Sequence record: LR745208.1
Length of the DNA stretch: 64,000 bases
Reading direction: 5' to 3' (one strand)
The first letter of the stretch is position 1; each line of letters begins with the position of its first letter. The notes under the pieces were generated by a model. That model was not told where the DNA came from, did not search any database, and worked only from the letters and a program-made list of their open reading frames with translations. The position numbers were made by a program, and so were the translations under genes. Positions 4,315 through 64,000 of the stretch are shown here, piece after piece.

Positions 4315-5452
4315 ACGCGACGTGAGTGCAGTGATCTGTTACCGTCACCTGAGTGAAGATATTTTCCGTTGAGCTACATGCAAACGCTATCCCCGTAGGA
4401 AAATATTTGCCATTCGCCCCGAAGAACTCTGCCCCAAGAATCACCGTCGCATAAGGAGGCACTTGGATCGTGATGCCTCCTGTAGGAGCAGTCACCCCAG
4501 TTATCGGAACTGTAGCAGTGTTAAATAGCATCATGAACCGGTTGGACCCAGTCAGGTTGTGCATTGCATATGAGAACACCTGACCCGCTGATGCTTTGAC
4601 GGAAAGTGTAGAATTTTGCCCCAGGTTCTGAAACCAACTCCACGAGTGGGTAGTCGAAACCACGGGCTTTTGCATGACACTGAGAAGGTCATTGGTATCA
4701 TCCTCACCGCGAATTCTCGTAGCCAGGGTGGTATTCAGGCTACCCAGGGAGTCTGCCTGGAGGGGGCCAAACTGGGCCTCTGTACGTGGTGTGGGGGCGG
4801 CATTGTAGCCTGCCATTGGCAGTTCGTTACCGAACCCGGTAACAGTGGCACTGGGTGTGGTATAGCCACCCCGCGCTCGATCCCATGTCCCTCCCGGACC
4901 CAGGAGCTTACCCCGTGCCTTTACAACCAGGGCATTAGCTGTGTTGGACACCCCGTCCGACCCAACTGTCTCTACAGCTACATTGTTGTTTGTTGACCCA
5001 TCTGAGATCGCCGTGATGATCGACCCGTTAAGGGATGCTTGTGTGGGTCCTACAACGCCCTCTGTACGTGGTGTGGGGGCGGCATTGTACTGTGCCCGTC
5101 CTGCCTTCTCGAACCCAGACAGATAGACAATGACTTCGTCACCAGCGGCGAAGTTTGCCGACATATCTGACAGGGTCAGGACGTTGGCTGCAAATGACAC
5201 ATTGGTTGTGGGGATGGTATCCACCACTCCTGCGGAGGTTCTACGTAGGATCCGGGCTGCTGCAAACACCTTGCTAGTAAGGGCAGCGTACCAGACGGTG
5301 TCTACAGCTGCCGAAAACGTAATGGTCTTGGCGGCAGCATTGGCCGTGGCGGTGAAGTCCCCACAGGCATTCGAGTAGGTACTAGAAGTACCAGAGGCTA
5401 CTGATAGATTTGGCCAGTAGGTACCATCTGGCAACAGCATGAAATTCGGCAT
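4307..5452 (-). CDS. virion structural/fibre-like protein
   Basis: 381 aa; internal repeat YNAAPTPRTE x2; C-terminal domain paralogous to 2756..3283. Confidence 0.7.
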   Translation of the reverse strand: MPNFMLLPDGTYWPNLSVASGTSSTYSNACGDFTATANAAAKTITFSAAVDTVWYAALTSKVFAAARILRRTSAGVVDTIPTTNVSFAANVLTLSDMSANFAAGDEVIVYLSGFEKAGRAQYNAAPTPRTEGVVGPTQASLNGSIITAISDGSTNNNVAVETVGSDGVSNTANALVVKARGKLLGPGGTWDRARGGYTTPSATVTGFGNELPMAGYNAAPTPRTEAQFGPLQADSLGSLNTTLATRIRGEDDTNDLLSVMQKPVVSTTHSWSWFQNLGQNSTLSVKASAGQVFSYAMHNLTGSNRFMMLFNTATVPITGVTAPTGGITIQVPPYATVILGAEFFGANGKYFPTGIAFACSSTENIFTQVTVTDHCTHVAYV

Positions 5453-26705: not shown

Positions 26706-27974
26706 TCAGCCGAATGCCTTGGAGATGTCTGGAGCCGATTCCCAGAGCTTCGACAGGTCGCTCACTTCAGACGAGGAGGCAACCTTGGCCACTTGGCCCA
26801 GGGTCTTCACGCCATTCGATGGGCTACGGGGCTGTGGGCGAAGAGCTGATGCCTTCTTGGCTTCCTTGGGCTCCTCTTCCTTGACTTCCTCTTCCTCGTC
26901 TGCCTTCTTCTCTTCCTTCTCGGCCTTTTCAGCCTTCTCGTCATTGATCTTCTGAAGTGCTGGGGGAAGCTCGCCTGCTGCCTTGGAACCGTAGATCGCA
27001 GACATGTCATCGTCCGACATCCCGTCATCCGAGTCCATGAACCCCATTGGGTCCTCCGCGTCGTCCATCAGCACGTCATCGGCAACCACTGGAGCCTCTT
27101 CCTCAGCGAGCATCGATGCAAGCATCGCCTCTTCCTCGGGGTCTAGCTCTCCAGCAAAGTAGCCTGGATCGTTCTGACCGGCCTTCTTCTTGCCCTCTTC
27201 CTTGTCGGCCTCTGGCTCATCGCCATCGGGCTCATCCTCGCCAGCCTTCTTGCCCTCTTCCTTGTCGGCCTCTGGCTTCTCGTCCTTCTTGGCCTCTTCC
27301 TCTTCGGCCTTCTTTGCCCAGAACGCTGCCTGCTTGGCCCAATAGGCTGCCTTCTTGGCTGCCTTGTCGTCTTCCTTGGGCTCTTCAGCCTCTGGCTCCT
27401 CTTCCGACTTCTTGGCCTCCTTCTTGGGCTCCTCAGCCTTTGGCTCTTCCTTGGGCTCCTCTTCCGACTTCTTGGCTTCCTTCTTGGCATCTTCCTTGGG
27501 CTCTTCAGCCTTTGGCTCTTCCTTCTCTTCTGTCTCCGCTAGGCGACGAAGAGCTGCCTGAATCTGGCGATCCGTCAGGTTCATGAGATCAAGTGCCTGA
27601 TCCTCAAGTGCGGTTGGGCTGGCCTTCCTGCCAAGCATTGCGGACGCAATGCGAATGCACTGTGCAGCCTTTGCTTCCAGGGCTGCACGAAGCTGGCGGG
27701 ACGCCTGCTTGCCTGCCCCACCTGGGAAGTAGTGCGCGGGGTCAGTAGCTGGGTGCCCCTGGGGCTCCGAGGTACCTGGAAGGGCTGGAGCCGCCCCATT
27801 TGGGTATGGGCCTGCCTTGGGGTCTTCTGCCCAAGCCGATGTATCACCATTCTCGTAGGCATCCGCCTCGGGATCTGGATACGCAGCTGGGTGAACACTT
27901 GGCTCCTGATAGCCTGGGGTTGCTGGGGGTGCTGATGCACCGCGGGAATTCCATGTGAGTCGGCGTCGAGACAT
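26706..27974 (-). CDS. capsid scaffold protein
   Basis: Very Glu/Lys/Ala-rich, with EEPK and EPEADKEEGKK repeats; lies between the protease and the capsid genes. Confidence 0.75.
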   Translation of the reverse strand: MSRRRLTWNSRGASAPPATPGYQEPSVHPAAYPDPEADAYENGDTSAWAEDPKAGPYPNGAAPALPGTSEPQGHPATDPAHYFPGGAGKQASRQLRAALEAKAAQCIRIASAMLGRKASPTALEDQALDLMNLTDRQIQAALRRLAETEEKEEPKAEEPKEDAKKEAKKSEEEPKEEPKAEEPKKEAKKSEEEPEAEEPKEDDKAAKKAAYWAKQAAFWAKKAEEEEAKKDEKPEADKEEGKKAGEDEPDGDEPEADKEEGKKKAGQNDPGYFAGELDPEEEAMLASMLAEEEAPVVADDVLMDDAEDPMGFMDSDDGMSDDDMSAIYGSKAAGELPPALQKINDEKAEKAEKEEKKADEEEEVKEEEPKEAKKASALRPQPRSPSNGVKTLGQVAKVASSSEVSDLSKLWESAPDISKAFG

Positions 27975-48272: not shown

Positions 48273-48892
48273 TGCCGCCCCCATGGAACCGTCTCGTCAA
48301 TATCGTCAATGGAAACCTCATCAATGGCAGACATGTTGTCCCCATATGTATGATGGTCTCCGTCCACCTCCACCAATGAGCGAGGGACAATCGTGATCGT
48401 GTCTATGGACCGAAGGGCAATTCGAATGGCCACCCGGTCATCAAACACATCAACTACACGTCCCTCCATGTGGGAGTAGTTCCCACCTATGATCCTGACC
48501 AAGGACCCTATCTCGATGTCCGAGCACAGGATTTCCTGAAGCTTGCGGCGCATCTCAGTGATCTTGGTGTCAGGGATGGTTTGAAGAACTCGAAGCCCGC
48601 GTGGACCGGAGATAGAAAATACCTTAGCCACCAGGGAATGCCGCTCCAACGCAAAATATCGCGTCTCGGGAAGCCCACTGGCTACAAAAGCATATCCCTC
48701 AATGAGTCTTACGGAAACAGTACGGCCACCTTTTGTGTAGGTGGCATAGGGAATGAAAACAGGAAACCCATCCTCCACCCCCAAGTCACGTCGTAGCCCT
48801 TGAGACAGTTTGCCGTCAATCGCCTTCAGCTCCCCCATCCGGGAAAGCTCCAGGGTCACCCAGGTTATCTGATCCCTCGTGTCCAATGTCAA
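48269..48892 (-). CDS. NusG/RfaH-like transcription elongation factor
   Basis: NGN-like LIEGYAFV; KOW GSLVRIIGGNYSHMEGRVVDV. Confidence 0.8.
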   Translation of the reverse strand: MTLDTRDQITWVTLELSRMGELKAIDGKLSQGLRRDLGVEDGFPVFIPYATYTKGGRTVSVRLIEGYAFVASGLPETRYFALERHSLVAKVFSISGPRGLRVLQTIPDTKITEMRRKLQEILCSDIEIGSLVRIIGGNYSHMEGRVVDVFDDRVAIRIALRSIDTITIVPRSLVEVDGDHHTYGDNMSAIDEVSIDDIDETVPWGRQ

Positions 48893-50702
48893 CGACCTTT
48901 GAGGCTTGTAGCTCCGATACGCGAAGCTTGACGAGACTGAAAAGCTCTAAAGGTTTAAGTCCGACTGGTTTCAAGCCACTTCCCAGTTGGGAAGAATGAA
49001 CTACGGGTGAGGGAAGATCAGCCTTGATTGCTCTTGGGTGAACAAACACGCCATCGATGAGTTGTGGTTTCCCATCCTGCACTTTGACATTACCATCGAT
49101 ATTGGACTTTGTGGTAGCAATTCTGGGAATATCGATAGGACGTTGAACCCCCCTATGAAGTTGGGCCAAATCGCACAATAGCATTGATGCTGTCGGCCTC
49201 CCCGGTCTGGACGCCAACTTGTCAGCATAATCCAGCAGCTCATCCCCCAGAGCCCGTCCCTCCTCTACCAGCCGCTGATTGATATAGGATGGGATAGGCA
49301 GAGGACCCAACGTGGACCGGTACACCAGCAATGACAGGTCCACCAACTTCTCGTACACCGTAATGGGGGACATGGCCTTCAGGACTGTTTCAGCCTTGGC
49401 CACCGCTGAAGGCAAATCCCGCTTGACATCCAATAGGAGTGCCAGCAACTCATTCATGAAATCAAGGTGCAAGTACTGGGATACATTGGGAATGTTCACA
49501 GCCCCCAACATAGAGACACCTTCCACAGCCTTCAGGCTGTCTCGGATATGGCACTCCGTGATCTCCCCAATGAGCCTAAGGGCCTCCATGTCATACTCGA
49601 TTGCCTCACTCTGGCAGATCTGGGCAAGTCTCTCGGCCACCTGTTCCGGGACTACTGGCTTAACAATGAATGCCGGAGCACACCGGCTCAGGATAGTATT
49701 TCGCATCTTCTCGGGCTCAGTGGTGCAGAAGATGCAGACCAAGAGCTTGTCCTGAGTGCCGGGATAATTGTCCTCCAGGGGCTTCAGGAGAGCATCCAGG
49801 GCGTCCGCAGAGAGACGGTGACAGTTCGATACCAGGATAGACCCTGGGGCCCCATCCGATGTCACGAAAAAATTGTGGGTACCTCCCACGGTCACATCAT
49901 AGACCATAGTGGGAATAGACTCCACTCTCAGGACCAGCCGGGCATCCCCCTTTCCCACATGTGTTGCAAGGTAGGTGTAGGCTGGGAGTCCATGGGGGTC
50001 TGGTGGATGCCCACGGAATCCTCCTAGCGAGGGGTCCGGCTCCACAAGCGTGTCATCCGCCACAAGGTCGCCCGCTTCCACCCAACCCCTGTTACTGGTG
50101 TAGAACCGGTGATTTGATGTGACGGTAAGGGTCACTCCAGTACTGAAAGTCAATGTAAGAGTGTCTCGCACCCCCTGAGAAAACCATCCTTCTAGGGGTG
50201 CCCATACGGTCCTATCCGTCGCCAGATCCTGGGAAAGCACATACCCCTGGTACCTGGATTCAACAAGGGTCCGAATGGACACCGGCCCCTCCGTGGTGAC
50301 AAGCTGGGCATCCTCAGTGAAGCACTCGTCAAAAAGGTATAGCTTCCGCTTCCCCGAGAAGGTGCTATACTGGATCTCCTCCACGATCTTACGGATGCTG
50401 TCTTTTCCGCTGTTAGTGGCCGCATCAATCTCGAAGAAGTCAGTCGAGGAGCCATTCTCTAGGAGTGACTTGCAGGAGGCACACTGGTCACAGGGGGCAC
50501 CATCAACGGGCTGGCCACACAGAAGTGCCCTGGCCAGGATCCTTCCGAGGGTCGTTTTACCCGACCCAAATGGGCCCGACAACAGGTAGGATTGATGGAA
50601 CCCGGCCCCAGACTTCACGTATTGCTGGAGGATCTGGATGGTGCTCTTCTGTCCCAGCACATCAGCATAGGTCCTGGGGCGAAATTTCGTGTCTAAAGAC
50701 AT
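48816..50702 (-). CDS. dnaX: DNA polymerase III gamma/tau-like clamp loader with a mini-intein
   Basis: KFRPRTYADVLGQ, GPFGSGKTT, C4 Zn module, EIDAA, LFDE-[intein]-CHRLS, TILSRC. Confidence 0.9.
   Translation of the reverse strand: MSLDTKFRPRTYADVLGQKSTIQILQQYVKSGAGFHQSYLLSGPFGSGKTTLGRILARALLCGQPVDGAPCDQCASCKSLLENGSSTDFFEIDAATNSGKDSIRKIVEEIQYSTFSGKRKLYLFDECFTEDAQLVTTEGPVSIRTLVESRYQGYVLSQDLATDRTVWAPLEGWFSQGVRDTLTLTFSTGVTLTVTSNHRFYTSNRGWVEAGDLVADDTLVEPDPSLGGFRGHPPDPHGLPAYTYLATHVGKGDARLVLRVESIPTMVYDVTVGGTHNFFVTSDGAPGSILVSNCHRLSADALDALLKPLEDNYPGTQDKLLVCIFCTTEPEKMRNTILSRCAPAFIVKPVVPEQVAERLAQICQSEAIEYDMEALRLIGEITECHIRDSLKAVEGVSMLGAVNIPNVSQYLHLDFMNELLALLLDVKRDLPSAVAKAETVLKAMSPITVYEKLVDLSLLVYRSTLGPLPIPSYINQRLVEEGRALGDELLDYADKLASRPGRPTASMLLCDLAQLHRGVQRPIDIPRIATTKSNIDGNVKVQDGKPQLIDGVFVHPRAIKADLPSPVVHSSQLGSGLKPVGLKPLELFSLVKLRVSELQASKVVDIGHEGSDNLGDPGAFPDGGAEGD
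49824..50324 (-). mobile_element. mini-intein (167 aa) in Walker B of DnaX
   Basis: Begins CFTEDA; block B VTSNHRF; ends VYDVTV...HNF...LVSN followed by Cys+1; no endonuclease domain. Confidence 0.9.
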
Positions 50703-59501: not shown

Positions 59502-61268
59502 ATGACTCAACACACCGCCCGCCAAGTCGTAGCATCTCTCCCAACCGGGATCAACCTCCAACACCTTGACGTGATGGCCCGCGCCCAATTCATGGAAGGT
59601 CTGCTGGGGGCTCCTCCCTTCTCGATCTCCGGAAAAGCTCACAGTAATGCCCAGTTGCGACAAGTAATTGGGAAGATGATGCTACGAATTGATCCAGAGA
59701 CGGATGCTACCACCAGCCCATGGGTTTCCATGGAGAGCCTGGGGCTGTATCGGACCGCCTGGGTCGCCGCCTCCAAGGCTGTAGCCAAGATGGGTCTCGA
59801 AGCGGAGGATGTTCTCCTGGCAGACATGGTCAAGGGAATTGGTCTTGCCAAAAATGGAAGCAAAACTGCGGATCTCACTCTCCAGAATGAGGTAGGTGAA
59901 GCTCTTGCTGAGACCAGTCACATTGGTAGCATCTTCTATGAAGTAGGCAAGCTCCTTCGGGCCAAGAAGAAGATGGTTCTATCGGGTGAAGTTGCCCTTG
60001 CTGAGATCCTCAACAAAATTGGCATGGCCGCTCGTCGTGAAGCAATGGACATTGGCCGCACCCTCATGCGCCGTCGCGTAATGGAGATGGAAAACATTGA
60101 GGAAATAGGTAAAGAAACCCTTGGGGATGCCGATGACATCAACGCCCCCGAGTGGGAGCAGATCATCTCTCAGGTCATGGGTAACCCGGCACACCCGGCG
60201 GCCCAAGAGTTTCTCTCTTGGTTGGTTGAACAAGCCAAGCGGATGTCTAGCCCTGTAGTGGTGGAATACTTTGAGTCTCTAGCTAGAGGGGAAGACCTTG
60301 GCTGGGGAATGGACTCGGTGATTGCTGCCCGTGTAGGAGTGAATCAGACCCACCTTTCCAATGGGCGCAAGAAGTTCATTGGGGAGATATCCAAAATCCT
60401 AACCACCCAAGGTGATGATCGGTTCCCGGAGGTTGTCAATATGATGTCGGACGCATCCTTCCTTTCTGACTTGTACCGTGGCAAAATTCATGGCCGCATG
60501 GCTCGACTCAAGAAAGCTGCTGCTGAGAAGTCCCTGCGAGGTAGGGTCATCCGTCTTGCCCATGAGAACCCAGCCCTTCGACCCCACCTCCTCCCTCTCC
60601 TCAAGCAAGCGGGGGATGTAATCCCCTTCCCAGGAACCTGGAGGGGCACTCCTGGAAGCAACCCAAACTTGGTGGAGCTACCCCGTAGCCCAATGTCTAT
60701 TGGGGAGACACTTGAAAACACCAAGGTTCGCGCACAGATGTTTGCCAATACTCTTCGGGTCACGGACCTGACCGATGCAGGTAAGCGTGGCAAAAGGGTT
60801 TCCCAATTCGCCCTCTATGACCTGGACCGAGCCAAGGTCAATCAGGAAACTGCCAGCATCTTCCAGAACCTAGTGGAAGCGACCGTTGGTGGCCATGCCA
60901 CATTCAGCACCCTCCTGCAAATGGCCAAGACTGTAGCGAACGAACAAGATGCCCTGGCCCCCAAGCTAGAGGTTTCTGCCCTTCGTGGTGTCGATGTGGC
61001 ACCAGCAGGAGTCAAGGCACTTAGAATTCAAGGGCAGTTTGTCTCAATCCGAGCAGAGCATGATGACTTCTCGGTAGAAGACACCCACGACCAGAACAAC
61101 CTGTCCACCTGCATACCAGCCATCAAAGGTGGCAAGAAGGACATCCCAGTCTTCTATCGCTGGGTCCAAGACAACCAGAGCCAGATCAAGTCCATGACCT
61201 TCCAAGAAGTCGTGGGAGCCATGCGAGGTCTTGGAATCAAATATCACCAGTACTGTGCAATGGACTGA
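59502..61268 (+). CDS. HTH/sigma-like N-terminal region fused to an internal leader motif and a C-terminal domain
   Basis: DSVIAARVGVNQTHLSNGRKK; SLRGRVIRLAHENPALRPHLLPLLKQAG at 60531-60614. Confidence 0.7.
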   Translation: MTQHTARQVVASLPTGINLQHLDVMARAQFMEGLLGAPPFSISGKAHSNAQLRQVIGKMMLRIDPETDATTSPWVSMESLGLYRTAWVAASKAVAKMGLEAEDVLLADMVKGIGLAKNGSKTADLTLQNEVGEALAETSHIGSIFYEVGKLLRAKKKMVLSGEVALAEILNKIGMAARREAMDIGRTLMRRRVMEMENIEEIGKETLGDADDINAPEWEQIISQVMGNPAHPAAQEFLSWLVEQAKRMSSPVVVEYFESLARGEDLGWGMDSVIAARVGVNQTHLSNGRKKFIGEISKILTTQGDDRFPEVVNMMSDASFLSDLYRGKIHGRMARLKKAAAEKSLRGRVIRLAHENPALRPHLLPLLKQAGDVIPFPGTWRGTPGSNPNLVELPRSPMSIGETLENTKVRAQMFANTLRVTDLTDAGKRGKRVSQFALYDLDRAKVNQETASIFQNLVEATVGGHATFSTLLQMAKTVANEQDALAPKLEVSALRGVDVAPAGVKALRIQGQFVSIRAEHDDFSVEDTHDQNNLSTCIPAIKGGKKDIPVFYRWVQDNQSQIKSMTFQEVVGAMRGLGIKYHQYCAMD

Positions 61269-61278
61269 TGAGATACCA

Positions 61279-61653
61279 ATGACAACTCTGCGGTCCAAAC
61301 TCATCCATCTAGCCCAAGAGAACCCGGCTCTCCGGCCCCAGTTGCTCCCCCTGCTCAAGGAGGCGGCACCCACTAAGGGGGTGGATGTGGCCAAGGCCAT
61401 TGAGCTTGGGGCCCTAGCAGAGAGCTATCTTAATGCCCTCCAGGCAGCACAGAAGAAGCTGAGTGTGGGACGTGACTTCTACCGTGCCTTGGAGGCATTC
61501 AAGCTCCCAGGGATGCAATCCTCTAGTAGCCCATTCTACAGCGTGGCCCTGGTCAAGGATGGTAAGCCAGAAGATGTTGGGGATGTAGATGGGTCACTGG
61601 TTAAGATGATTCACACGCTCGAACTGGCTGTGAAAGAGCTCCAGAAGGTCTGA
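61279..61653 (+). CDS. putative internal head protein carrying the MTTLRSKLIHLAQ leader
   Basis: MTTLRSKLIHLAQENPALRPQLLPLLKEAA. Confidence 0.7.
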   Translation: MTTLRSKLIHLAQENPALRPQLLPLLKEAAPTKGVDVAKAIELGALAESYLNALQAAQKKLSVGRDFYRALEAFKLPGMQSSSSPFYSVALVKDGKPEDVGDVDGSLVKMIHTLELAVKELQKV

Positions 61654-61680
61654 ACCTCCCCCTGCCTTGTAAAGTGTCCC

Positions 61681-62490
61681 ATGACCTACATCAGGTGCAT
61701 GGACGCCCTAGACTTCATCCAGTCCCTCCCCAACAACTCAGTCGACCTGCTCCTCACAGACCCTCCCTTCTATGGAATTGTTGGGGATGCTTGGGACAAC
61801 CAGTGGACGGATGAGAAGCAGTTTGCCAGATGGCTGTCCGACATCCTTCTAGCAGGCTTGCCCAAGCTCTCCACCACAGGATCCCTTGTGTTCTTTGGGG
61901 GGTTAGGTAAGCACAAGTCCCACCCCCTGTTCAGGATCATCACAGCACTGGAAGACGGTGGGTTCACGTACAGAAATTGGATAACTTGGCGGAAACGAAG
62001 AGCATTCGGCAAGAGCCATGATTATCTCTTTCTTAGGGAAGAAATTCTTTGGCTCTCCAAGTCCGCCGAACGTACCCAAGTCACATTTCACAAACCGTAC
62101 CTGGACACCAAGAGGGGCTATGCTGGATTTGACGCCAAGTACCCAGCACACAGCGAGTTCAAGCGTGTAGGGAACGTCTTCCTCGACATCGAGGATCTTG
62201 AGTATGAAACGGTGATAGAAGACATCACTGAGCTGTTCCGTCCACAGAGGTCATGCCAAAAACCCTCCAAGCTCATGGAGAGGCTTGTTGCCACCCACTC
62301 CAACAAGGGGGACATGATCGTAGATCCCTTCTCTGGCTTCGGTTCTACAGGCATTGCAGCCGTGAAGTTGGGTCGGAGGTTCCTGGGGTCGGAAGCCATT
62401 GAGGCAGATGCCCAGAGGGCTAACCAGCGAGTCATAGATGCCCTTCCTGTCGAAGAAGAGGGAACTGTCCTTGACCTACTAGAGGGATGA
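61681..62490 (+). CDS. DNA amino-methyltransferase, beta class (N6-A/N4-C)
   Basis: LLTDPPF (motif IV) precedes VDPFSGFGST (motif I); CQKP. Confidence 0.9.
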   Translation: MTYIRCMDALDFIQSLPNNSVDLLLTDPPFYGIVGDAWDNQWTDEKQFARWLSDILLAGLPKLSTTGSLVFFGGLGKHKSHPLFRIITALEDGGFTYRNWITWRKRRAFGKSHDYLFLREEILWLSKSAERTQVTFHKPYLDTKRGYAGFDAKYPAHSEFKRVGNVFLDIEDLEYETVIEDITELFRPQRSCQKPSKLMERLVATHSNKGDMIVDPFSGFGSTGIAAVKLGRRFLGSEAIEADAQRANQRVIDALPVEEEGTVLDLLEG

Positions 62491-62588
62491 ATCTGCCTGC
62501 CTCTACAGGGCCTTCTCTGAAGGTGTTCTGTGGGCCGATAGCATAAATTCCAGAAAGACGAGCTTTTCCCTATCGCTCAAGTAGAGAT

Positions 62589-62966
62589 ATGGGCAACCTC
62601 GGGGAGCCAATTACACCTACAAGTACGCCAACTTCTGGTACACAACCCCAACCATATCAGGGTGATATGGATTTCCTGGAAGATTGCTGCCAATGGTTGA
62701 ATGTTGTGGATGGGATCCTAACCGCACAGGCTTTAACCAAAAGCCCCCATGTCCTTGAGATCAATCTGTTCATGAGTCGGCTTTGGACCGCTTCCCCGGC
62801 CCTCTATGGGGTTGCCAAGTTTTGGATTTTCTGGCTTGGTCTCCGAATCCTCCATCGATCCACCTGTAAAGAGCCAGCTAAAGTACGTCGCCATATACTA
62901 CTTGCCATAGGTGTGACCTTCATGACCATCAACATATGGCATGCCTACATCTACCGACTCATGTAG
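62589..62966 (+). CDS. DUF5658-like membrane protein
   Basis: LNVVDGILT...EINLFM...hydrophobic helices; the start may be 62667. Confidence 0.6.
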   Translation: MGNLGEPITPTSTPTSGTQPQPYQGDMDFLEDCCQWLNVVDGILTAQALTKSPHVLEINLFMSRLWTASPALYGVAKFWIFWLGLRILHRSTCKEPAKVRRHILLAIGVTFMTINIWHAYIYRLM

Positions 62967-63231
62967 GAAGGGAATCGACTGGCTCAGGTCGAATTTCAGG
63001 TCAGGCTACCCAGTTCCGTTGGTATGGGTTCCTAGGTGCAATTTGTGTCTGAGTGACTTCCCTACCAGTCTTGTGAGCCTCTTCGGTATCCCCGAAGTTT
63101 CCACAGGGGATCTGGTGCATGGAAACCTATGGTTTCAACCCATAGTCTCCCAGTGGGGTCATCGTAGTAATACGAGTGGAACAGGAGCCAAACTCCAACA
63201 AGCCGCCACATCAGAGCAGAGTTGGTACAGT

Positions 63232-63368
63232 CTGATCTCTCCAAGGGGAGAGTGGATTGAAACAAGTCTGTCACTGTCAAAGGGAACAAGAAACACAGCC
63301 CGGCGATCCTACCCGGTAGGATCAACCAGTAAGTCAGTGACTCTCCCCATGGGAGAGTGGATTGAAAC
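63232..63368 (+). CRISPR. two type I-C-like repeats separated by 73 nt (mini-array or repeat mimics)
   Basis: 63232-63263 CTGATCTCTCCAAGGGGAGAGTGGATTGAAAC and 63337-63368 GTGACTCTCCCCATGGGAGAGTGGATTGAAAC; identical 3' 18 nt, CTCTCC/GGAGAG stem; no cas genes in the window. Confidence 0.7.
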
Positions 63369-63677
63369 ATCTGAGGACCCATTCCACATCGTTGAGACTC
63401 CAGAGATGTATGTCTATGGAGTAGATGTAGGTAATGTCTACTGTAAGGATCCTTCTGGATCCGTAGTATTAAGTCCTGGGTTCAATAGTGGTAGAAATAC
63501 ATCTGATACCTCAGAACGACCCTTTTAGGGAGGGTCACCACCCAAGGGAATGAGGGACAAACTCACCCCTAGTAGATCCGTCTACTGAAGTAAATCACTA
63601 ACGAAATAGAGTAGTTAGTGAGAACAAGACAGAAGAAAACGTCAAGGTGAAGACCTTAGACGTAAGGGGGATCTCTT

Positions 63678-63705
63678 GTCCATTGCCGCCTACGGCAACT
63701 GAAAC
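63678..63705 (+). CRISPR. solitary type I-F-like repeat unit
   Basis: GTCCATTGCCGCCTACGGCAACTGAAAC, 28 nt, TTGCCG/CGGCAA stem; resembles the I-F consensus GTTCACTGCCGTATAGGCAGCTAAGAAA. Confidence 0.5.
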
Positions 63706-63782
63706 TCCTATTGAGACCTCAATACACATGGATGCAGTAGCCTACCAGTTGTCTAGTTTCAGTTCTCATCTCAAGTACAGCC

Positions 63783-63818
63783 AATTGGGGTCTTGGAGAA
63801 TTTTCCAAGACCCCAATT
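63783..63818. repeat. perfect 15-bp inverted repeat
   Basis: AATTGGGGTCTTGGA-GAATTT-TCCAAGACCCCAATT. Confidence 0.9.
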
Positions 63819-64000
63819 CTTTGAGGAACCTACTAAATGGCTAGCTCCTACCAAGGTCAGTCGAGGATCAACTTCAAGAGACTGGTCACTGACTGTTGGG
63901 GACTCCTGAAGGGAAGTTCATATATGGTCTTCCCAGGAACCAAGAAGTCTCATCCCTCACAGGTGGTACTAGTACAGCCCACCAATATGACACCGGGATG

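Follow-up and report, generated by a model that had tools for sequence, protein, structure and literature searches.

A dispersed family of type I-C CRISPR repeat-like units in the genome of an uncultured huge phage, candidate RNA decoys

The stretch of 64,000 nucleotides (nt) analysed in this study, referred to as the window, corresponds to positions 372001-436000 of LR745208.1, a 485,034-bp unannotated "uncultured phage" genome of a groundwater huge phage. Close to the end of the window two units were found that resemble the repeats of type I-C CRISPR systems, unit 1 at 63232-63263 and unit 2 at 63337-63368, both on the + strand. The main new result of our analysis is that this pair belongs to a family of at least six I-C-like units spread over the 485-kb genome, as detected with a covariance model at E < 0.05. 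For the reading that the pair and the dispersed units are RNA decoys of the RNA anti-CRISPR (Racr) or solitary-repeat kind, with the pair as a dedicated non-coding locus, we see roughly equal grounds for belief and for doubt.

Five host repeats, together with a single viral unit unrelated to them, made up the covariance model, which contained none of the units of this phage. When it was run against approx. 43 kb of array-free host DNA, no match was obtained. In the phage genome the model matched unit 2 (window 63339-63368, +; 38.2 bits, E 3.3e-9) and unit 1 (window 63235-63263, +; 32.8 bits, E 2e-7), and outside the pair U5 at genome positions 481,748-481,777 (-; E 1.8e-6), U4 at genome 117,116-117,143 (-; E 1.8e-4), U3 at genome 123,083-123,108 (+; E 0.009) and U6, which lies within the window at 48968-48996 (-; 16.9 bits, E 0.046). 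A weaker seventh candidate, U7, was detected at genome 482,014-482,034 (-) with an E value of 0.78.

In each unit the base of the stem, a C-G and a U-A pair, abuts the 11-nt tail UGGAUUGAAAC (UGGCUUGAAAC in U6), and the loop, the 5' overhang and the inner pairs vary. The stems seen were CTCTCC/GGAGAG, CTCTCCC/GGGAGAG, CTTCC/GGAAG, CTCCC/GGGAG and CTTCCC/GGGAAG. Counted from the base, pairs 1 and 2 were invariant, and pairs 3 and 4 swapped between C-G and U-A in a compensatory manner. The tail was exact in three of the four units outside the pair; the hairpin of U6 (CTTCCC, loop AACT, GGGAAG) is followed by the tail TGGCTTGAAAC, with one mismatch. Five exact copies of the 11-nt tail were counted in the genome, compared with 0.1 in shuffled sequences, and at four of these five copies a hairpin of at least 5 bp ended at the tail, compared with none in shuffles.

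An earlier reading of the window, made from its letters alone (the sequence-only reading), had described the pair as two 32-nt units with a shared end, a CTCTCC/GGAGAG stem and diverged 5' halves. All of these features were found again. The shared 3' end is GGGAGAGTGGATTGAAAC; full identity covers 19 nt (GGGAGAGTGGATTGAAACA), with 22 of 24 positions identical, and over the whole length 8 of the 32 positions differ, these being located in the 5' parts. Unit 1 (CTGATCTCTCCAAGGGGAGAGTGGATTGAAAC) is composed of a 5' overhang (63232-63236), a hairpin (63237-63252) and the 11-nt tail TGGATTGAAAC (63253-63263). Its hairpin, CTCTCC, loop AAGG and GGAGAG, has a 6-bp stem and a 4-nt loop, with a folding energy of -8.9 kcal/mol. 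In unit 2 (GTGACTCTCCCCATGGGAGAGTGGATTGAAAC) the hairpin (63341-63357) has a 7-bp stem and a 3-nt loop (CTCTCCC, loop CAT, GGGAGAG) and precedes the same tail at 63358-63368; the fold reached -13.4 kcal/mol (z -3.06). Both units were assigned by sequence, fold and the match to the covariance model, and in both the hairpin stops exactly where the 11-nt tail starts, the 5' hairpin arm being offset by one base between the two. For the shared 18-mer with at most 3 mismatches the chance expectation is 0.15 per window. The pair is not a chance occurrence. A candidate degenerate and inverted third copy, CCCCACTGGGAGACTATGGGTTGAAAC, lies at 63116-63142 (-), 90 nt upstream of unit 1, with its tail sequestered by a GAAACC/GGTTTC hairpin; its alignment score was unexceptional genome-wide and it was left uncounted.

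The units are separated by 73 nt (63264-63336, +), made up of 41 nt (63264-63304), a palindromic hairpin and another 13 nt. The near-perfect palindrome GATCCTACC-C-GGTAGGATC at 63305-63323 (+), which the sequence-only reading had placed about 40 nt past unit 1 within a 73-nt separation, was confirmed and begins 41 nt past the unit. As RNA it forms an 8-bp hairpin with a 3-nt loop (-11.9 kcal/mol, z -2.84). No T-run follows it, and a terminator scan gave nothing at this site. Past unit 2, after 35-36 nt, a long imperfect hairpin begins (63404-63504, +), with outer arms at 63404-63416 and 63492-63504 and the tip GGATCC-TTCT-GGATCC at 63449-63464. The fold of 63396-63512 had -34.4 kcal/mol (z -2.05), and for the fold of 63253-63540 the z score was -3.07, with none of 200 shuffles being equally stable. 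From the modelled fold, the long hairpin may be the 3' structure of an RNA that begins at unit 2.

Judged by their sequence, units 1 and 2 are true type I-C CRISPR repeat derivatives, in agreement with the repeat architecture assigned to them in the sequence-only reading. Their last 18 nt are the end of the 33-nt repeats found in arrays of Anaerolineales/Chloroflexi metagenome-assembled genomes (MAGs), in which the spacers measure 32-37 nt. An exact scan of IMG/VR for the 18-mer returned one real array (L011), with 33-nt repeats GTCTCTCCCTGCATAGGGAGAGTGGATTGAAAC and spacers of approx. 34 nt, and single copies in three further viral contigs. Among 185,579 species genomes the same 18-nt end was found in arrays of Anaerolineales/Chloroflexi MAGs and of small contigs binned as Methylomonas, and a metagenome scan added four arrays with the same repeat end. 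On the MAG contig JACPVF010000013.1 the array stands directly after WYL-cas3, cas5d, csd1 (cas8c), cas7, cas4, cas1 and cas2, and the Cas5 beside it carries the NCBI name "type I-C". The comparison with known repeats thus led to real arrays, one of them beside a I-C cas operon. In three Chloroflexi I-C loci of this repeat family (L037 6687-9887, L039 6766-9981 and L041 1525-4740) Cas3 has N-terminal WYL and WCX domains, and a 68-aa open reading frame (ORF) with a faint MarR match is located upstream. Two metagenome contigs, L048 and L049 (Ga0209550_10203999 and Ga0214921_10100816), contain arrays of 33-38% G+C with longer repeats, a 72-74-nt period and the same 18-nt end. Unrelated lineages therefore share the tail plus GGGAGAG.

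In published descriptions of type I-C repeats a 7-bp stem with a pentaloop lies between a 2-nt overhang and an 11-nt 3' overhang, and recognition by Cas5c (Cas5d) is reported to need the base of the stem, U22-G23-G24 after the cut and the 3' overhang, the loop and the 5' overhang being unimportant (PMC8524198). Both units of the pair have the traits of this repeat class: approx. 32-33 nt, a short 5' overhang, a stem of 6-8 bp, a loop of 3-5 nt and an 11-nt tail. They retain the stem base, UGG and the 11-nt tail and vary in the loop and the 5' overhang, which is the reported Cas5c pattern. From the cited study and from 10.1101/2024.12.27.630466 we infer that Cas5c would cut at 63252/63253 in unit 1 and at 63357/63358 in unit 2.

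A k-mer scan of the 485-kb genome found no CRISPR-like array. With Cas2, Cas1, Cas4, Cas7, Cas8c, Cas5d and Cas3 of a Chloroflexi I-C locus as tblastn queries, no I-C cas homologue below an E value of 0.1 was detected in the window or in the remaining phage genome, other cas types not having been searched; to this extent the statement of the sequence-only reading that the window holds no cas gene was upheld and extends to the rest of the genome. Instead of at least three regular repeats with spacers of approx. 32-37 nt, as in a canonical CRISPR-Cas locus, the pair consists of two repeats with a 105-nt period. We also considered whether it could be the edge of a regular array. In the phage DNA past the window end (L001) there are genes for a clamp-loader subunit, for a methyltransferase and for a ribonucleotide reductase, and the pair is therefore not such an edge; the array-edge alternative is excluded by this sequence together with the whole-genome scan. 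The array scan flagged the 12-mer TCTTCCTTGGGC, which occurs three times with 40-120-nt spacing at window 27370-27492, inside the coding region 26706-27974 (-), and is probably a protein repeat.

The pair lies in a stretch of lowered G+C content (0.495) that reaches from 62967 to the window end at 64000 and 206 nt beyond it (+), in total approx. 1.24 kb. We regard this stretch as non-coding because over this whole span no frame of either strand carried a codon-usage signal, and because the one annotated ORF there has neither a family nor a homologue. This ORF of 195 aa (62941-63528, +) spans the pair and is a gene call in public assemblies, which we judged spurious. Based on codon usage trained on 118 long ORFs of the phage genome it scored -0.03 per codon, the long ORFs themselves reaching 0.246 +/- 0.088. 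It had no match in Pfam or PHROG, and among 5.8 billion proteins the matches were itself and one 99% variant only. The phage sequence is also IMGVR_UViG_3300025030_000038, and the phage was found nearly unchanged in more than 20 groundwater assemblies, which are identical over the 195-aa ORF except for one single-residue variant and so offer no informative variation at the pair locus. A search of IMG/VR with the neighbouring proteins, for relatives of the locus, returned the same phage only.

Since the genes that flank the pair, from 59502 onward, all lie on the + strand, units 1 and 2 are sense to local transcription. Read-through from these upstream genes is a possible source of transcription for the pair. 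Rfam gave no family in 60000-64000 and no tRNA was found in the window. Within the same non-coding stretch, at 63783-63818, there is a palindrome with 18-nt arms and a perfect centre (AATTGGGGTCTTGGAGAA / TTTTCCAAGACCCCAATT), followed by CTTTG; it is a possible weak terminator or binding site. The stretch is flanked by two N6_N4 DNA methylase genes (window 61681-62490, +, and L001 821-2056, +). Together with a DUF6094 methyltransferase-like ORF at U4, this places several self-methylation genes, of the anti-restriction type, near the units.

Five of the six model-supported units, and also U7, are oriented in the same direction as the local genes, and the pair, U3 and U5 have an intergenic or non-coding placement. 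U3 fills a 34-nt intergenic gap with its last base directly before the ATG of a gene for a TPR protein, and the end of U5 is 4 nt ahead of the start codon (ATG) of a SET-domain gene. U7 precedes an orphan ORF of 61 aa by 35 nt, and small orphan ORFs flank both U5 and U7. U6 is placed on the sense strand within the 3' end of an intein-containing clamp-loader ORF (48816-50702), and U4 is antisense within the 1323-aa DUF6094 methyltransferase-like ORF (L004 14972-18943, +). U3, U4 and U6 are solitary; U5 has weaker repeat-like copies nearby. One degenerate copy, GGGAAGAATTTGTAAC, at L001 45794-45810 (-), genome approx. 481,794-481,810, overlaps the stop codon of the 61-aa ORF. The sequence CCGGTATGGTAC that follows it echoes CGGTATAGTAC after U7, which suggests a local duplication of unit plus flank. 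The clamp-loader gene that holds U6 (DNA_pol3_delta2; window 48816-50702, -) is interrupted by an intein-like domain with matches to Intein_splicing and PT-HINT.

Units of the same family were also found in other viral contigs. In L010, L012 and L013 they lie in intergenic DNA, the unit of L010 just after a tRNA-Met gene. L013 (IMGVR_UViG_3300037149_000105, 147 kb) has three I-C-like units within 1.5 kb, at 250-330 and 1626-1654; the first two stand 52 nt from each other, with unrelated stems and an identical tail. In L051 (IMGVR_UViG_3300032070_000613, 141 kb) two I-C-like units occupy 5058-5230, and each is followed by a stretch of approx. 25 nt and then by a hairpin with a T-run, a layout that is like that of Cracr arrays (described below). 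The two stretches resemble one another. The first of them has CAAAG.GAAC.A.AAAC..CAGCC in common with the interval between units 1 and 2, that is 19 of 24 nt (shuffle p approx. 0.005). A similar sequence, ACCAAAGGTGCAGCC, follows the L013 unit at 1644.

The sequence-only reading had regarded the pair as repeats with an oversized spacer, for which a decoy or RNA anti-CRISPR was a better fit than a normal spacer. Its decoy part remains the best-fitting reading; the pair is not a stand-alone mini-array with one oversized spacer, being two of at least six dispersed and mostly solitary units. As the pair belongs to such a family, a spacer is a less likely reading of the 73-nt interval than a linker or a guide-like segment that a 3' hairpin follows. 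Viral solitary repeat units have been reported to act as RNA anti-CRISPRs, with RacrIC1 as a validated I-C example; with RacrIF1 an aberrant complex with extra Cas7f is formed and inhibition is dose dependent (PMC10651486). If the phage units worked as decoys, they would be transcribed along with the phage genes, and Cas5c of the host would take each of them for a repeat and cut at the 3' base of the hairpin. It would remain on the 11-nt handle and nucleate Cas7 and Cas8c on a phage RNA that guides nothing, so that Cas proteins would be drawn off the real CRISPR RNAs (crRNAs), as described for Racr RNAs. The predicted product of the tandem pair is approx. 105 nt long; in it the 11-nt handle would be followed by 73 nt that enclose a hairpin and then by a 3' hairpin of 21 nt. 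Since this is about twice the length of a canonical guide, it might bind more Cas7 per molecule or lead to aberrant assembly. The decoy reading fits best because the units are dispersed, mostly solitary and sense-oriented, with only the Cas5c determinants conserved.

A number of observations weigh against decoys. U4 and U6 are embedded in coding sequence, the former in antisense, and two others, U3 and U5, abut start codons, which hints at some part in the expression of phage genes. None of the units has a member of a known anti-CRISPR protein family as its neighbour. In 62400-64000 no sigma-70-like promoter or terminator was found, although host or phage promoter types may differ. By the rules of SRUFinder, a unit that has a second one within 100 bp is classed as part of an array or mini-array and not as solitary (PMC10651486), and units 1 and 2, being 73 nt apart, fall outside the solitary class. 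In addition, 613 spacers (385 + 228) from arrays of the repeat family were compared with the phage without a match, the best hits of 15-16 nt being at chance level. The repeat family as such is a sequence-based clue that points to Chloroflexi/Anaerolineales as the host. The class II ribonucleotide reductase of the phage (L001 3098-6013, +), in contrast, has its nearest named relatives in Polyangiales/Myxococcota and Bdellovibrionota, at approx. 60% identity. This affinity conflicts with the hint from the repeats.

The main rival to the decoys is that the pair encodes guides of the Cracr type, which we consider unlikely. Cracr RNAs are guide-like RNAs by which host effectors are made to repress cas or toxin promoters, and nine two-spacer I-C viral Cracr arrays have been reported (10.1101/2024.10.29.618823); related I-C crRNA-like RNAs are made from solitary repeat units and have a repeat-like hairpin with an 11-nt handle, a guide-like stretch and a 3' hairpin (10.1101/2024.12.27.630466). 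Accordingly, unit 1 together with the palindromic hairpin and the 41 nt before it, and likewise unit 2 together with the long hairpin and the 35 nt before it, might be two crRNA-like RNAs that load the host I-C Cascade and, through partial pairing next to the protospacer-adjacent motif (PAM), repress a host promoter, be it of cas genes, of a CRISPR-guarding toxin or of another defence. The local layout follows the pattern of a repeat-like element, a guide-like stretch and then a hairpin or second repeat, and is also that of the two-spacer I-C viral arrays (10.1101/2024.10.29.618823). The hairpins begin 41 and 36 nt past the tails, near the 32-37 nt of host-array spacers, and L051 shows the same arrangement of unit, stretch and T-run hairpin twice, with the 19 of 24 nt shared with the interval of the window. 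In approx. 140 kb of I-C loci from candidate hosts, from which the true host may differ, however, neither stretch had a seed match with a TTC or TTA PAM; the loci included the sequence upstream of cas3 and the gap between cas3 and cas5. No host-encoded crRNA-like gene was found in these loci either. The reported viral Cracr spacers are mostly shorter than canonical ones, not longer, and the four other units of the phage lack a guide-like layout, two of them leading straight into phage coding sequence. That feature is the starting point for another reading, to which we give a rather small chance: host Cas5c could serve as a processing or sensing device, with units at gene junctions being cut or masked and phage messages thereby switched, instead of or on top of a passive decoy. 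The TPR, SET-domain and small orphan ORF messages would then be altered in stability or translation only in hosts with an active I-C system. In favour of this are the sense orientation of five of the six model-supported units and U7, the position of U3 directly before the TPR ATG, of U5 4 nt before the SET-domain ATG and of U7 35 nt before the 61-aa ORF, and the 3' arms (GGAAG, GGGAG and GGAGAG), which resemble ribosome-binding sites that the hairpin would mask. It is without precedent in the cited literature on cas-less phage repeats, however, and the pair in the window does not stand before a gene. The distance from the purine arm to the start codon is not uniform (11, 15 and 46 nt), and intergenic placement is equally expected of plain decoys.

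The two remaining readings concern the pair as an array or as a leftover. A two-repeat mini-array, in which the 73-nt interval is a true spacer that targets a competing phage or plasmid or the host, would explain the order of repeat, unique sequence and repeat, and compact cas-less arrays that resemble host arrays are known in huge phages (PMC7162821). The interval is, however, about twice as long as the 32-37-nt spacers of arrays with the same repeat and contains a stable hairpin, and most other members of the family are solitary. No match to the interval was found in GenBank phages, in the phage's own genome, in the candidate host loci or in seed scans of IMG/VR that left every sixth base free, and the stretch after unit 2 had no target in the phage genome, the candidate host loci, GenBank phages or the IMG/VR seed scans. 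A comparison of the flanking stretches with phages and candidate host loci thus yielded nothing, and we regard a targeting spacer as very improbable. Finally, the units may be inert leftovers of host array DNA, or a coding repeat in which both encode GEWIETS, 35 codons apart, in the 195-aa ORF; this we think has little likelihood. With a spacing of 105 nt, which is divisible by three and corresponds to 35 codons, both units stand in the same frame of an open ORF, and gene callers annotate it. Against this, the ORF is without coding signal and without homologue, and due to the one-base offset the hairpin arm is encoded by different codons in the two units. The six dispersed copies keep the stem base, 10-11 of the 11 tail bases and compensatory stems, which neither neutral decay nor selection on a peptide would do. 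We concluded that the coding reading of the pair is largely refuted.

RNA anti-CRISPRs derived from solitary repeats are a recent discovery, known from a small number of model systems. If the phage units are indeed decoys, such RNAs would be extended to an uncultured 485-kb groundwater phage and to a I-C repeat family so far seen mainly in Chloroflexi MAGs, and an unusual multi-copy, dispersed and operon-embedded layout would be added to the known kind of viral solitary repeat units. Part of this layout would escape published finders: being classed as an array, the pair is dropped, some units lie within genes, and array finders require three repeats. The units in front of start codons also raise the question whether repeat mimicry feeds into phage gene expression as well.

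Compared with the Chloroflexi/Anaerolineales I-C repeat, e.g. that of JACPVF010000013.1, the phage units share the last 18 nt, the stem CTCTCC(C)/(G)GGAGAG and the 11-nt tail; they differ in the 5' overhang and the loop, have a stem of 6-7 bp instead of 8 bp, and stand outside any array and not beside cas genes. The cas-less arrays of huge phages (PMC7162821) come from the same kind of genome, and the present phage, uncultured, of 485 kb and with an accession of the LR745xxx series, appears to be from the set of that study, although the accession was not found in its text. As in those arrays, the repeats resemble candidate-host arrays and no I-C cas homologue was found on the phage. Unlike them, the locus has two repeats only, with irregular spacing and no spacer target found, and its further copies are solitary and dispersed; an array finder that needs three repeats would skip it. 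With the Cracr arrays and the I-C crRNA-like RNAs the pair shares a degenerate repeat, a unique stretch, a 3' hairpin or second repeat, the 11-nt handle and the presence of two units in one putative transcription unit. For the defining feature of Cracr RNAs, at least 9 PAM-proximal bases against a host cas or toxin promoter, no match was obtained in the candidate host loci, and the unique stretches of the phage (41 and 35 nt) are not shortened. RacrIC1, from a Bifidobacterium pseudocatenulatum prophage (PMC10651486), differs from the phage family in that the latter has at least six copies, two of them in tandem 73 nt apart and several in operons directly before start codons, with no recognisable acr neighbour and no promoter found. 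In common with RacrIC1, the phage units are viral, non-coding or intergenic in their placement, with no cas genes found in the virus. They mimic a host repeat in both sequence and hairpin, would be aimed at type I-C and would be expected to compete for Cas proteins.

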